This document shows positions 36,816 through 54,492 of a stretch of 64,000 bases of DNA, in pieces. A program made the position numbers and the translations under genes. The DNA is taken from assembly GCA_965603825.1 (NCBI GenBank), contig CBFDEM010000012.1, positions 310,001-374,000 of the forward strand, given 5' to 3'. Under the pieces are notes generated by a model, which made no database searches, was not told where the DNA came from, and was given only the letters and a program-made list of their open reading frames with translations. The DNA comes from Blepharisma stoltei ATCC 30299 (taxonomy: Eukaryota > Protista > Ciliophora). How positions within the stretch are numbered: the stretch's first letter is position 1; each line of letters begins with the position of its first letter.

Positions 36816-38438
36816 ATGGATTTAAAATGGTTCGCACTACTTATCGCGGTCACTTTGTCCGCTGATTGCGTTTTAGAAAATTTTGCTATTGGAGATGTGA
36901 ATATTACTTCAGAGGCTCAATTTAAAAACTTCACAAAGGAAAATGAACTGTTTCTTCTTGGAGTTTCAGCCAAATGGTGCAAGAATTGCTGCCATTATGA
37001 GCCGATCTACAAGCAAGTACTGGAGGTGCTTGATACCTTAACGCCAAGAATCAAGCTGGCAAGGGCTGATATCAGCAAAACCAATTTCATCAAAAAATTT
37101 ATGGCAGAAAATGATGAGGTCCCTGTGATTTATGCAGTGAAAAAAGGAAAGTTTTATAAATATCATGATTACGTGAACTTTGCAAAAATTGTCAATTTTG
37201 TAGACAGAATGTATTTACCAGTTATAACTTTGAAGAGTGAAGAAGAAATTGAAAAATTTTTAACGCCGCCAGAAGGCAATAATAACTATTTGACACTGGT
37301 TGCTTTTATATATGACGATGATGATGCTGATGACTCTTTAGCAAAGCAATATGAAAAAGTCTCGATGGCTCTGGCAAATTGGGTGAACTGCCAAGTGGGA
37401 ATTGTGAGAGACAAAGCATTGATCAAAGAATTAAAGCAAAGAGAAAAATGGATTCCTTACTTGAACAGCCTAGTTTTAAGTAAAAGAGGAGCCGATGATA
37501 AAGTTCTAGACTTAGCGCTCCCTCAGAACTTAGGGAATTGGATAACTAGAAACGGTGTAGGGCTGGTTGAAGAGCTTACCCCTTATAATTATCAAGTCTA
37601 CAAAGGAATTGGACTGCCTATGCTCATCATGTTTCTAGACAAAAACAATGTTAATATGGACGAATATCTTGATATTTTCAAAAAAGTCGCCAGGGACTTT
37701 GAAGACCATATAAAATTCGTTTGGCTTGATGGCACTGAAGAAATCAATAAGCAAAGAAAGCGAAAAATTGGGCTTGTGACTGAAATTCTTCCAAGTCTCG
37801 CTTTTAATTTAGCAGATGGAAGAATTTACCCATATTTGGAAGGAAAACCAATTACAAGGGAGTCTATTGCAGAATTTGTAACAGAATTTTTAGAAAATAA
37901 GCATTCAGTCAAAAATGTCCCTGACTATAAGCCAGATATTGAATTAGAAAAGAAATATAAAGACACTCCAATAGTCACAAGAGAAACTTTTGATGAATTG
38001 GTGCTTGGTGAAGGCTTTGACGTTGTAGTGCTATTTTATTCTTCCCACAAAAATCAGGAATCATACACAATAGCTCCTTACTTCAATAAGCTTGCTAAAA
38101 GATACGGCGAGCTGGAATTTACAAATTTGCGAGTTTATAGGATGGATGTAGCAATACAGTCAGTCCATAAATTTGTTAAGACAGATACTATTCCTTCGAT
38201 TTATTTATTCCCAGCTTTTCACAAACATCCGCCTTATATAAGATACACTGGAGACATGGATGTGCTTAGGATGATGTTTTTCGTCGAAAAGTACGTAGAT
38301 GTTAAATTCGAACTGCCTGATGTTCCACATTTAAGTCCAGATGAAGCTGAGGAATACTGGGATAAAAAGTCCAAGCTAACTCCTGAACAGCAGCAAGAAG
38401 AAGCCAAAAGGCATGAAATAAGACACTTTGACCTTTAA
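36816..38438 (+). CDS. PDI-like ER protein with four thioredoxin-fold domains
   Basis: Signal peptide, AKWCKNC in the first domain, last domain lacks CxxC, C-terminal HFDL resembling an ER-retrieval signal. Confidence 0.85.
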   Translation: MDLKWFALLIAVTLSADCVLENFAIGDVNITSEAQFKNFTKENELFLLGVSAKWCKNCCHYEPIYKQVLEVLDTLTPRIKLARADISKTNFIKKFMAENDEVPVIYAVKKGKFYKYHDYVNFAKIVNFVDRMYLPVITLKSEEEIEKFLTPPEGNNNYLTLVAFIYDDDDADDSLAKQYEKVSMALANWVNCQVGIVRDKALIKELKQREKWIPYLNSLVLSKRGADDKVLDLALPQNLGNWITRNGVGLVEELTPYNYQVYKGIGLPMLIMFLDKNNVNMDEYLDIFKKVARDFEDHIKFVWLDGTEEINKQRKRKIGLVTEILPSLAFNLADGRIYPYLEGKPITRESIAEFVTEFLENKHSVKNVPDYKPDIELEKKYKDTPIVTRETFDELVLGEGFDVVVLFYSSHKNQESYTIAPYFNKLAKRYGELEFTNLRVYRMDVAIQSVHKFVKTDTIPSIYLFPAFHKHPPYIRYTGDMDVLRMMFFVEKYVDVKFELPDVPHLSPDEAEEYWDKKSKLTPEQQQEEAKRHEIRHFDL

Positions 38439-51138: not shown

Positions 51139-52030
51139 TATAGTGAGATTATCTAATTCGAAATTTGAAGAGAAATGAGACAAAAAGATAAATTTATCGC
51201 AAGCAATATTAGTAAAAAAAGAGCTGGGGAAATGTAACAGCTGACTGATGTCAGTGAATTAAGAAAGATTTGATATTCATTCACTATGAGCATATAATAA
51301 AGATTTTATATATATATCTTATTTCTTTTTTTTTAGAATTTGATTTTTGCTTTGCAAATGCGAAAAAAATTATCTAGCTATATTTTAGCCTTAAATTAAG
51401 AAATTAATTTAGAATAAGCTTGCATCATTCAGAAGTCAGTATTCTATAGGACTTAATTAAAAATATCTGGATTTAATACTTCTTAAATATCAAAATAATC
51501 ATTGATTATAGGCTCTTTTGAAAATCAACTAGCTGAAGATTGATATATTAAATCAAAATTTTAGTCGAAATCATTTTTCCTGGGTTCTGTCTGCTCTTTA
51601 TGAAAAAATAATTTATAGTCATAATAATCATTTGTTTGCTTAATAACCACTTTTTACAGTATTTTATCTTTAAAATAATGAAATGAGAAAGATTTTGCTA
51701 GATATTTGAAATTTTATAGCCTTAATAAATGCTAAATAAACATCATTTTAAATAAATTTAAATAATTCAAGCAGCATTATTTGTAAAATATCGGCATTGA
51801 GCATAAGTATCATCAATCGATTTAATCAAAATAAATATAAAAGATATTGATATTAACTTATCGAAATAAATAGGGTTTTATAGATTTTATGGCTAAAAAC
51901 TAAAAGGGCAAGAATGGCACTAAGTATATTTCTATTAATTATGTCTCAGTTATGCTATTCACAGAATATATGATGTAATTATTCCTACTTTTTATACCCA
52001 CACAATAGTTTTGAAAATGTTTAATTTAGT

Positions 52031-52077
52031 CAGCCTCTGAATAATCCACATCTTTAGGAGTATTCTTCACTTGGCTG
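52031..52077 (-). promoter_or_regulatory. SECIS-like element in the 3' UTR
   Basis: Minus-strand RNA CAGC-CAA-GUGAA-GAAUACUCC-UAAAGAUGU-GGAUUAUUC-AGAG-GCUG: helix I CAGC/GCUG, tandem GA core, 9-position helix II with one mismatch, AAA in the apical loop. Confidence 0.8.
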
Positions 52078-52097
52078 TATTAGTACAATCTTTTGGA

Positions 52098-52526
52098 CTA
52101 ACGTCAAGTCCCAGTAGCGCAAGGCGCTGTGTATGAGCTTGGCCTTCCTATTCGAGGCCCACTTGGGTCATATCGGTTAAGCTCGGCTTTTTTCACTGGC
52201 CTTGGAGGTGGTTGAAGTCCACTATTTCTTGGTTCAGGCTTTTTTTCCTCTTCAATATCTGGCTTTGGCTCTAATTTTTCCTCCTCTTTATCTTCTTCAT
52301 AAACCCTTGCCCTCCTTAGCTCTTCTTGTCGTCTTTCCCAATTTGACCTCACTTCAAGTCTAGTTCGGTTCAAACTTTCTTCAGAGAAAGTCTTTTTATG
52401 GTATATTGAATCTCTAAGCTTGACATATGCTGAAAATAGCAGTATCAATATTAACACGTAAATCCATAAAAAAGAACTATCACCTTTACTCCAAAAAGAC
52501 GGACGTAAGGCTTCGAGATAATCCAT
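52098..52526 (-). CDS. Selenoprotein S/K-family ER membrane protein, 142 aa, penultimate Sec (UGA 52104-52106)
   Basis: Single N-terminal TM, coiled coil, Pro/Gly/Arg-rich tail ending PCATGT-UGA-R-UAG; SECIS-like hairpin immediately downstream. Confidence 0.8.
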
Positions 52527-52565
52527 TACAAATTATAATTACGTGCAGATTAGACATTTTTTACG

Positions 52566-53453
52566 TTATTCTTTAGGGAATGGAAATGAATTTATGTATT
52601 GATCGATATCCACGATCTGCCAATTATAGAATTCTTTTTCGAAATTGGCATCAATAAAGCGCCTAAAACCATATTCTTTGTCGTATTGTTTTTTATCTCT
52701 AGGAAAAAGCTTTTCAAAGCGGATTATATGGAATTCATATTCTTCAGGATCAGCTTCGCCATCAGCTAGGCTATTCTGTGAATATTTGTCATATATTTGG
52801 AACCTCATTTTTGAAAGTAATCCAAAATCCACCTGGCAAATCATTATTGGGTATTTTTCAAAGAGCTCATGAAGATGTTTGGAATCTCTTGGAAAATTTC
52901 TTATATAATAAGGATTTGCACTCTTTTCAATTACTGCATTTTTATCTGAAATTTCATTTAAAAGAGTTTTGTTCCTTAAGCTAAATTCAAGTCTAACTGG
53001 ATAGCCTAAAGCATTTATCTGTAAAACATCGTATTCCGATGGAGAAAAATTTTGATTGATAATAGGTGATATTCCTGTATATGTAATGTATCCAAATAAT
53101 CTATATTCGATCACTTTTTCTCATCGGTTTAATAACTTGGCTCGATACCCATCATTTCTCAATTTCATTCATGCTTTGATTGATTTCTCATAAATTTCTT
53201 CCTTCATTATTTTCTTTAGTGTTTCCTTATCATTTTTGTCAAAAGCAAACATCATATCTATAAACTTTTGCACAAAATCTGCCTTATCAGCTGAAGTCAA
53301 CCCAAAATGTTCAATGCATTTATGGTAAAACCACTATATAGACAATACATAATCATTAGAAGGCGTCCCAAAAGTCCCAAATCTAAAAGGAAAATCAAGG
53401 GTCTGAGTAAAAGGATCGTGATAATTTTTAAGTAAGTGACTAGGCCATTTCAT
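52566..53453 (-). CDS. Hypothetical protein, possibly with a Tim44/mL45-like C-terminal domain; one intron
   Basis: ATG 53453, intron 53334-53348, TGA 53169 and 53121; HIIRFEK...WQIVDID ending. Confidence 0.65.
53334..53348 (-). other. 15-nt intron GTATTGTCTATATAG
   Basis: Removes an in-frame TAG; consensus A10. Confidence 0.82.
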
Positions 53454-53460
53454 GATTATA

Positions 53461-54492
53461 ATGTTGATTTATTTAATACTCATTTCATTAGTCAAAGGAA
53501 ACTGGCACGATGCTCTAGAAGAAGACAACTTTGAAGCAAGTACCTGTGGAAAATATCAATGTGCACCTTCCACTGCTACAGTCCCTTCAGGATATTGTGG
53601 AACAGTCACAAATGTAAACGTTTTCAACTTGAAAGCTTGCCCAACATCAGGAACAAGCACTTTTTGCAATACTACAACATTACAATGCACAGCAGCCCCA
53701 GCCAGTTCTGCATTAGCTTCTTATCCAGGCGAGCCTTGCACAAGTCAATCTGACTGCAAATATGGAACTTGCACAAGCAAAAAATGCGTTGGGGTCGCAA
53801 AGAATGGAAAATGCACAACACATGCCCAATGCGCTCCTGGATTGAGATGCGCGCCTGGTGGGACTTGCACTGCCCAATTGGCAATTGGAACTACAGGGTG
53901 TAGAGACTACCAAGATTGCGTAAATTGGGCTGGCTGCAATGCTACTTATACAAGCACAAATGGGACGTGCACCTCTTATGCAACCCTAAGTAATGGAGCA
54001 GTTGTGACTGACTGTGTTAATGGATGGTCTCATTTATGTAAAAGCGGATTTTGCTCAAATACTCAAAGTTGGTATGGAAATATCGGAATATGCCAATCTG
54101 CTCCAACAAGTGTAAAAACTCTTCCTGTAAGTTGTACACAAGATACTGACTGTGTTGGAACCGATGGGACAAATTTTTATTTAGGTCAATGCACCTGTGG
54201 CTATAATAGCGCTGGAACTTCTTATTGCAGCTCTTTTATTGGAGATGCGCCTGGAGTTTTGCTTATACAGACCTGGCTTAAGACGTTAAAACTCACAACC
54301 TCATGCAACACTGGCAGAAGGGCTAGTAGCGCTTGCATGTCTTTAATTGGCAAAACCACCTTAATGAAGCAAGTAAATTTTGGCTTTGCGCACTACCCAT
54401 TAACTATTAACAACGACGCATGTATAAAATCTATATACACTCCTGCCTATTGGGGTTTATCGCTATCAGAAGAATTTGATACTTTTGAATAA
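53461..54492 (+). CDS. Secreted cysteine-rich repeat protein
   Basis: Signal peptide MLIYLILISLVKG; more than 30 Cys in GxxCxxxxDC-type repeats; start could be 53452. Confidence 0.85.
   Translation: MLIYLILISLVKGNWHDALEEDNFEASTCGKYQCAPSTATVPSGYCGTVTNVNVFNLKACPTSGTSTFCNTTTLQCTAAPASSALASYPGEPCTSQSDCKYGTCTSKKCVGVAKNGKCTTHAQCAPGLRCAPGGTCTAQLAIGTTGCRDYQDCVNWAGCNATYTSTNGTCTSYATLSNGAVVTDCVNGWSHLCKSGFCSNTQSWYGNIGICQSAPTSVKTLPVSCTQDTDCVGTDGTNFYLGQCTCGYNSAGTSYCSSFIGDAPGVLLIQTWLKTLKLTTSCNTGRRASSACMSLIGKTTLMKQVNFGFAHYPLTINNDACIKSIYTPAYWGLSLSEEFDTFE

Follow-up and report, generated by a model that had tools for sequence, protein, structure and literature searches.

Several eukaryotes are known in which the codon UGA specifies selenocysteine (Sec) besides another amino acid. 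In the heterotrich Condylostoma magnum and in Parduczia sp., UGA can mean Trp, stop or Sec (Swart et al. 2016, PMC4967479), and the codon stands for Trp and Sec in Amoebophrya sp. (PMC6394959) and in Blastocrithidia spp., where the SelTryp mRNA contains both readings (PMC12153298). The original prediction for the gene described here regarded such a dual meaning as apparently uncharacterized in heterotrichs; it had already been published in these reports on the heterotrich Condylostoma and on Parduczia, Amoebophrya and Blastocrithidia. Cys and Sec are the meanings of UGA in Euplotes crassus (Turanov et al. 2009, Science 323:259, as cited in PMC12153298). Euplotes resembles the present case in that one codon serves two amino acids, even in one mRNA, with Sec confined to UGAs that lie near the 3' end and are accompanied by a SECIS; unlike in Blepharisma, its default UGA is Cys, not Trp. 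The dual UGA of E. crassus was reportedly shown experimentally; the dual Trp/Sec cases, Blepharisma included, all rest on sequence inference.

For Blepharisma, the literature describes decoding of UGA as Trp by a tRNA-Trp(CCA) with a 4-bp anticodon stem, and no tRNA(UCA) is predicted apart from the Sec tRNA and a mitochondrial one; a tRNA-Sec(UCA) is also mentioned in a preprint (10.1101/2023.10.09.561518). B. stoltei shows a depletion of UGA over the final 25-30 codons ahead of UAR stops, and this has been read as residual recognition by eRF1; the Blepharisma eRF1 orthologue recognizes UGA weakly in vitro. We found no paper on the Blepharisma selenoproteome, on a SelS-like ciliate family or on the proximal motif presented below.

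We analyzed a stretch of 64,000 nucleotides of B. stoltei DNA (contig 12:310001-374000), hereafter called the window. It carries an rDNA unit at 1-4920 (SSU from model position 235, 5.8S and complete LSU) that directly adjoins protein-coding genes, inside a contig of at least about 1.1 Mb.

The gene of interest in this window very probably encodes a small membrane-anchored selenoprotein, the penultimate UGA of which would be read as Sec by means of a SECIS, although the organism otherwise uses UGA for Trp. As in Condylostoma, Parduczia, Amoebophrya and Blastocrithidia, UGA would be Trp by default and Sec with a SECIS, and no tRNA(UCA) other than the Sec tRNA is fully cognate to the codon. In contrast to these organisms, UGA has so far been seen in Blepharisma only as a sense codon, with Trp as the main competitor, and the gene family is SelS-like, whereas the other dual-UGA cases involve TrxR, SelT, SelK and SelTryp. 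The SelS-like gene adds an example; the principle of one codon for two amino acids is already established.

A SelS-like gene with a penultimate TGA

The open reading frame starts with the ATG at 52526 of the minus strand and comprises 140 sense codons, the last of which read ...A-P-C-A-T-G-T. They are followed by TGA (52106-52104), CGT (52103-52101) and TAG (52100-52098), exactly the gene end that had been claimed. Equally correct was the claim that the other three Trp codons are UGG: residues 12, 21 and 63 are all encoded by TGG, and the penultimate codon is the sole in-frame TGA. The public annotation (P0001, 142 aa) reads this codon as Trp and ends ...T-G-T-W-R; with Sec, the protein ending ...W-R should be corrected to ...U-R. 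No spliced gene model was required in any step. The features of the gene are as follows.

52098-52526, minus strand: putative selenoprotein coding sequence; 140 codons, then TGA (Sec), CGT (Arg) and TAG; covered by RNA-like contigs
52104-52106, minus strand: putative Sec codon 141, TGA; TGA at the matching site in 10/10 family members
52119-52121, minus strand: codon TGC of Cys136, 5 residues before the putative Sec (C-x4-U)
52419-52478, minus strand: single N-terminal hydrophobic transmembrane (TM) segment, about residues 17-36, according to sequence, AlphaFold2 and family alignment
52275-52382, minus strand: long charged helix, residues 49-84, with the conserved W-E-K/R-x-Q-E-E-L; AlphaFold2 pLDDT 80-96

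The TM segment contains the family-invariant Trp21 and Tyr23, and the charged helix gives way to a disordered, Pro-rich and basic tail. Indeed, AlphaFold2, run with a 13-member alignment, predicted helices at residues 18-46 (pLDDT above 90) and 49-84 and disorder from 85 to 140. Cys136 is likely the selenylsulfide partner of Sec; the upstream Cys is kept in 8 of the 10 family members for which DNA was examined.

The gene had been proposed to belong to the SelS/SelK family. Its SelS-like architecture, with a TM segment, a basic tail and a penultimate Sec codon, held up; a match to either Pfam family did not. Pfam SelS (PF06936) matched neither the window protein nor any of the 13 family members, and genome-wide the profile gave only a 13.7-bit match elsewhere. 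Similarly, Pfam SelK (PF10961) had no match in the window protein, the 13 members or the genome, and the control genomes were likewise without a match. The family profile found nothing below E = 0.6 among PDB sequences, and a search of the ESM Atlas by AlphaFold2 shape was set aside as uninformative, having returned only generic long-helix matches (TM 0.41-0.53). When the ESM Atlas was searched by features, Selenoprotein S clusters came first (0.91, 193 of 256 features shared) and made up 9 of the 10 best family-bearing matches. Furthermore, all elements of the SelS topology (TM helix, long helix, disordered tail, penultimate Sec codon and upstream Cys) were found in the sequence and the AlphaFold2 model. 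Because layout and ESM features fit while the Pfam profiles fail, we describe the predicted protein as SelS-like in architecture and do not assign it to PF06936.

The likeness to Selenoprotein S (SELENOS/VIMP, PF06936) extends from the N-terminal TM helix, the long cytosolic helix and the disordered, basic, Gly/Pro-rich tail to the penultimate Sec with its upstream Cys partner and to a conserved proximal 3'UTR element just past the Sec codon, the mammalian counterparts being PSL and SPUR. The window protein differs in lacking a PF06936 match and, with 142 aa, is shorter than human SelS (~189 aa). Residues 65-74 (R-R-Q-E-E-L-R-R-A-R) resemble the VIM, the p97/VCP-interacting motif, of SelS; Q-E-E-L alone is conserved across the family. 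Selenoprotein K (PF10961) is also a small single-pass membrane protein, and its tail, which ends Gly-Gly-Sec-Gly-Arg, resembles the G-G-U-R/S ends of several family members, but PF10961 finds no match here and SelK is without the long charged helix. The ciliate selenoproteome would thereby gain a SelS-like family outside Pfam coverage.

A profile search of 1.84 billion representatives recovered 14 relatives, and the DNA was read for ten members; a second one, of 5.8 billion proteins, yielded no named relatives. Shared features are the start of the TM segment (R-P-S-F-W...G-D-Y-x-F-L-W-x-Y), the helix motif W-E-K-K-Q-E-E-L and tails of the form C-x3-5-G-G or similar. The orthologue P0002 (locus L009), which is 45% identical, ends C-V-T-G-S, followed by TGA, CGC and TAG, and its SECIS differs from that of the window by compensatory pair changes in both helices. 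In all ten members, the predicted protein stops at the TGA, which is followed by one or two codons, TAA or TAG, and a SECIS-like hairpin. Conservation of TGA rather than TGG at this site, together with the SECIS, was thus found in 10 of the 10 members examined. The Trp positions of the same ten genes gave TGG 25 times and TGA once, against ten TGA at the putative Sec site (Fisher p = 4e-8), with the reservation that no homologue, and no Stentor orthologue in particular, was traced to a standard-code organism and that it is codon statistics alone which exclude UGA = Trp in the homologue species. None of the database homologues had the W-R or W-S ending expected from TGG at this codon. In L009 and L037, read-through of the TGA fuses neighboring called genes, and therefore their organisms probably also read TGA as sense. 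Two distant homologues, L047 (715-800) and L048 (1597-1690), are without the upstream Cys, and where UGA would be expected the cores of their SECIS-like hairpins have UGC and GGA, which may point to selenoprotein genes in decay or to non-canonical cores.

The SECIS hairpin and its transcript

The putative Sec codon is followed by a hairpin of 47 nt, which begins 20 nt past the TAG stop and ~26 nt past the Sec UGA.

52031-52077, minus strand: SECIS element, type I; core UGA at 52069-52067, apical AAA at 52055-52053, 3' GA at 52037-52036
52009-52030, minus strand: last part of the 3'UTR, up to the ends of the transcript contigs (52009 or 52020)

Helix I is CAGC(C)/(G)GCUG, of 4-5 bp. In the core, 5' AAG-UGA-A (52072-52066) faces 3' A-GA-G (52038-52035), which corresponds to the non-Watson-Crick quartet (A/G)UGA-N versus N-GA-N; the quartet positions are invariant among the sequences of the covariance model described below. 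The base before the core UGA is G (GUGA) rather than the commoner A (AUGA). Helix II has 9 pairs with one C.U mismatch, and the unpaired AAA lies 11 nt past the core UGA, in keeping with the ~9-12 bp and the AA(A) at 10-13 nt that characterize SECIS elements. The helix, GA core and apical AAA are those of the SECIS-like hairpin that had been claimed at 52031-52077, and the covariance score given below agrees with it. The core UGA starts 37 nt downstream of the Sec codon's first base, which is less than the minimum of 51-111 nt proposed for mammals. The spacing in the TrxR gene of the same genome is about equal, and a similarly short one is known from Condylostoma TrxR (PMC4967479), which likewise has its Sec codon only shortly before the SECIS.

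The Rfam SECIS models gave no match at E <= 10 over 51500-52700, only noise. Because of this, the hairpin was tested against the genome's own elements. In the GPx gene on contig 62, TGA occupies the catalytic position (V-N-V-A-C-E-U-G-L-T) and a SECIS hairpin lies in the 3'UTR; the TrxR gene on contig 33 ends G-C-TGA-G-TAG and has in its 3'UTR a SECIS of the same design as the window hairpin. By sequence, both TGAs are classical Sec sites. Since these clear TrxR and GPx elements were also unmatched, we read the Rfam silence as a sensitivity limit of those models. A search for Rdx/SelW gave one TGA-containing match (L036), rejected because its TGA lies at a Trp-like place and not in CxxU.

A covariance model was built from four hairpins (window, orthologue, GPx and a distant homologue), on which the window hairpin scored 55.9 bits. 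The genome (41.46 Mb, 64 contigs) was scanned at E <= 10, with 150 of ~31,000 first-look candidates scored and the TrxR element missed, and gave four matches among the 150: the window hairpin (55.9 bits), the GPx 3'UTR (50), a contig 25 paralogue of the window gene (41.5) and a site on contig 30 (25.1). Elements outside the training set were also recognized by the model, namely, those of the paralogue (41.5 bits), L039 (24.7) and TrxR (19.8). Over eight elements, 91% of cells were paired, with compensatory changes in 13 of 14 pairs, including all 9 pairs of helix II; controls in which the partner was moved by 1-3 columns were paired in 33-46%, a clear margin even if the alignment, being fitted to the model, favors structure. 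The hairpin is more than chance and is a canonical eukaryotic SECIS.

The contig 30 site (L044:1355-1549; G000:C30, about 527600-527800) is an observation in its own right. There, a mini-ORF of 41 codons precedes the 25-bit SECIS; it begins M-C-[TGA], and its end, R-G-G-C-G-R-stop, is like the SelK tail except that Cys replaces Sec.

Assembled contigs from four runs of one study span 52009-52521 without differences and end at 52009 or 52020, i.e., 11-22 nt past the SECIS; the same runs gave no transcript coverage at 51500-52008. We consider these spliced contigs to be RNA because a 15-nt intron at window position 53334, in the upstream neighbor gene, has been removed from them in three runs; this intron belongs to the tiny-intron class typical of Blepharisma stoltei. 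As the contigs pass the 3' end of the SECIS at 52031, the SECIS lies within the mRNA and not beyond the poly(A) site, and the 3'UTR, of at least 78-89 nt, includes it whole.

Two probable readings of UGA and their rivals

The window clearly uses TGA as sense: its 44 long ORFs, bounded by TAA or TAG, contain 80 in-frame TGA and 162 TGG. That it stands for Trp, as the original prediction held, is in good agreement with this count and with the paralogue on contig 25 (G000:C25, about 53538-54034; L043:1052-1548), which encodes 140 aa followed by U and R (coding sequence L043:1052-1480). Codon 26 of this gene is a TGA at a family-invariant Trp (F-M-[TGA]-I-Y compared with F-L-W-I-Y in the window protein), and codon 141 is a TGA followed by CGC, TAG and the 41.5-bit SECIS. 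Read in this way, the paralogue would have both meanings of UGA in one mRNA, as does Blastocrithidia SelTryp, and is the clearest internal evidence of two readings. We are highly confident, as far as sequence can tell, that UGA would carry two amino-acid meanings in this genome, and both in a single mRNA in the paralogue; having one UGA of each kind, this mRNA offers an internal control.

The genome also encodes most of the machinery that the prediction presupposed. The tRNA-Sec(UCA) scored 75.6 bits, above the Rfam cut-off, with agreement from ARAGORN and a T-run after the gene. SepSecS (423 bits) and SelD/SPS (214 bits) were found by genome search, and eEFSec has both eukaryote-specific domains, PF21208 and PF21131. 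PSTK is represented by a 30-bit candidate only, a second protein of the KTI12 family. SBP2 was the part that did not receive a confident identification, the sole candidate being a divergent L7Ae-domain ORF of 306 aa.

Sec-tRNA had been expected to compete at the penultimate codon with Trp decoding rather than with termination. The first half of this idea is reasonable, the Sec tRNA being the sole fully cognate one, but Sec insertion may compete there with termination as well, as the depletion of UGA near stops indicates. Given this depletion before UAR stops and the weak recognition by eRF1, the product of failed Sec insertion could be either the Trp form or a protein that lacks the last two residues; a selenium-dependent switch between Sec and Trp is speculation. 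Since UGA has been seen in Blepharisma only as sense, the Sec, Trp and stop outcomes would be separable by mass spectrometry, which recommends this organism as a test system.

Were the penultimate UGA a Trp codon and the downstream hairpin an unrelated or chance 3'UTR structure, the frequent use of UGA for Trp here, the ...T-G-T-W-R end of P0001 and the lack of an Rfam SECIS would all be accounted for. We consider this extremely unlikely in view of the TGA in 10/10 genes at this site versus TGG at 25/26 true Trp positions, and in view of the avoidance of UGA by B. stoltei in the last 25-30 codons before the stop. Furthermore, the hairpin has all SECIS hallmarks together with covariation, and hairpins of the same kind follow the TGA-containing GPx and TrxR genes, in which the TGAs occupy known Sec sites. 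The depletion near stops, taken with the weak in vitro recognition of UGA by Blepharisma eRF1, can also be turned into an argument that the codon is mainly a terminator, acting through residual eRF1 near the mRNA end, so that the protein ends at Thr140 and the SECIS is a decaying relic. L047 and L048, without the upstream Cys and with the deviant cores UGC and GGA, would be in line with such decay. However, an in-frame TAA or TAG one or two codons further on in 10 of 10 homologues is unexpected if UGA ends translation, the window SECIS is intact and the best-scoring among the genome candidates scored, the Cys five residues upstream is kept in most of the family, and the Sec machinery is retained. 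Termination as the main function of this UGA is therefore very unlikely.

In the Sec reading that we favor, the penultimate UGA would be decoded by Sec-tRNA(UCA), delivered by eEFSec in an SBP2-dependent manner and directed by the SECIS from 37 nt downstream, within a 3'UTR of ~90 nt. The product would have one N-terminal TM helix, a long charged helix and a disordered basic tail ending C-x4-Sec-Arg, and elsewhere in the genome UGA would be read as Trp by the near-cognate tRNA-Trp(CCA). The gene and its transcript, the covarying SECIS, the conserved TGA, the Sec machinery and the two classical selenoenzymes are direct results, whereas Sec insertion itself, a redox role of the Cys/Sec pair, localization to the ER or another membrane, and any role of the proximal motif are inferred.

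A proximal motif after the stop codon

Between the Sec codon and the SECIS lies a 16-nt motif that starts 5 nt after the Sec codon.

52083-52098, minus strand: proximal motif of 16 nt, possible hairpin; starts at the G of TAG, with the core CAAAAGATTG at 52086-52095

The stem would be GUCCAA/UUGUAC with one mismatch and the loop AAGA; a 6-bp stem is possible. The core, CARAAGAUYG, occurs at the same offset past the stop in the window gene, its orthologue, the contig 25 paralogue and the unrelated TrxR, and only once in the 64-kb window. The pattern TGA-NNN-TAR-NN plus core was found 6 times in the genome and 0 times in a reversed control; five of these six sites belong to genes with a C-terminal Sec codon. 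The sixth, at contig 14:124444, is not preceded by an open frame and is probably a chance match, of which ~0.4 were estimated. The element, TGA-NNN-TAG-NN-CARAAGATTG, was located at the following sites, each on the gene's strand.

Window 52083-52098, gene's strand: proximal element
L025:2961-2976, gene's strand: proximal element
L043:1480-1495, gene's strand: proximal element
L063 and L064, near 1507-1522, gene's strand: proximal element

The motif is shared by the genes for two SelS-like paralogues, for TrxR, for a 50-residue protein and for one with a PUB domain; at least three of the five are mutually unrelated. Two further candidate selenoprotein genes (L063 and L064) were recovered by the motif search alone. 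In contrast to these C-terminal Sec genes, GPx, with its Sec codon 122 codons before the stop, lacks the proximal element. The proximal hairpin is stable (z about -2.3) in the window gene and TrxR, unlike in L009 and L043, and therefore the motif is conserved more in sequence than in structure. Its outer pairs show a compensatory difference between TrxR and the PUB gene.

Without the TGA, the relaxed motif had 14 matches in the genome, one of them chance-like and seven belonging to one repeat family. Because it also matches this TGA-less repeat, the motif is informative only with TGA-NNN-TAG. The seven copies (L070-L076; G000 contigs 18, 40, 51, 52 and 61, mostly near contig ends) read ...TTAGAAGAG-TAG-NN-CAAAAGATTGAAGCAATAAAATG..., have neither a SECIS nor a preceding TGA, and are unrelated to selenoprotein genes.

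We tentatively suggest, as one possibility, that the 16-nt element is a Blepharisma-specific Sec-redefinition element, by which a C-terminal UGA would be singled out for Sec rather than for Trp or residual termination. It might do so by pausing the ribosome or by spacing it from a SECIS that lies ~26 nt past the UGA. The nearest precedent is mammalian SelS, in which a proximal stem-loop and SPUR act in a position-dependent manner just past the penultimate Sec codon (PMC6844570). The shared motif offers a mutable handle on how the ribosome tells two UGAs apart, a question that concerns all UGA-reassigned eukaryotes.

The two genes found by the motif search differ from the SelS-like family. The first (L063:1357-1575; G000:C41, about 102050-102270) has ~50 residues, starts M-G-N-C, a myristoylation-type N terminus, and ends R-P-C-W-T-G-U-R if its TGA is read as Sec; its SECIS, at L063:1529-1575, scored 25 bits. 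A second SECIS-like hairpin (L063:2008-2055, 27 bits) lies ~480 nt downstream of the first, and no TGA-containing ORF was found upstream of it. The other gene, on the minus strand of L064 (G000:C54, end near 37310), encodes ~190 aa with a Pfam PUB domain (60 bits), ends K-K-G-G-U-R on the same reading, and is followed by a SECIS-like hairpin seen by eye and folding. PUB domains bind p97/VCP, a partner of SelS and SelK.
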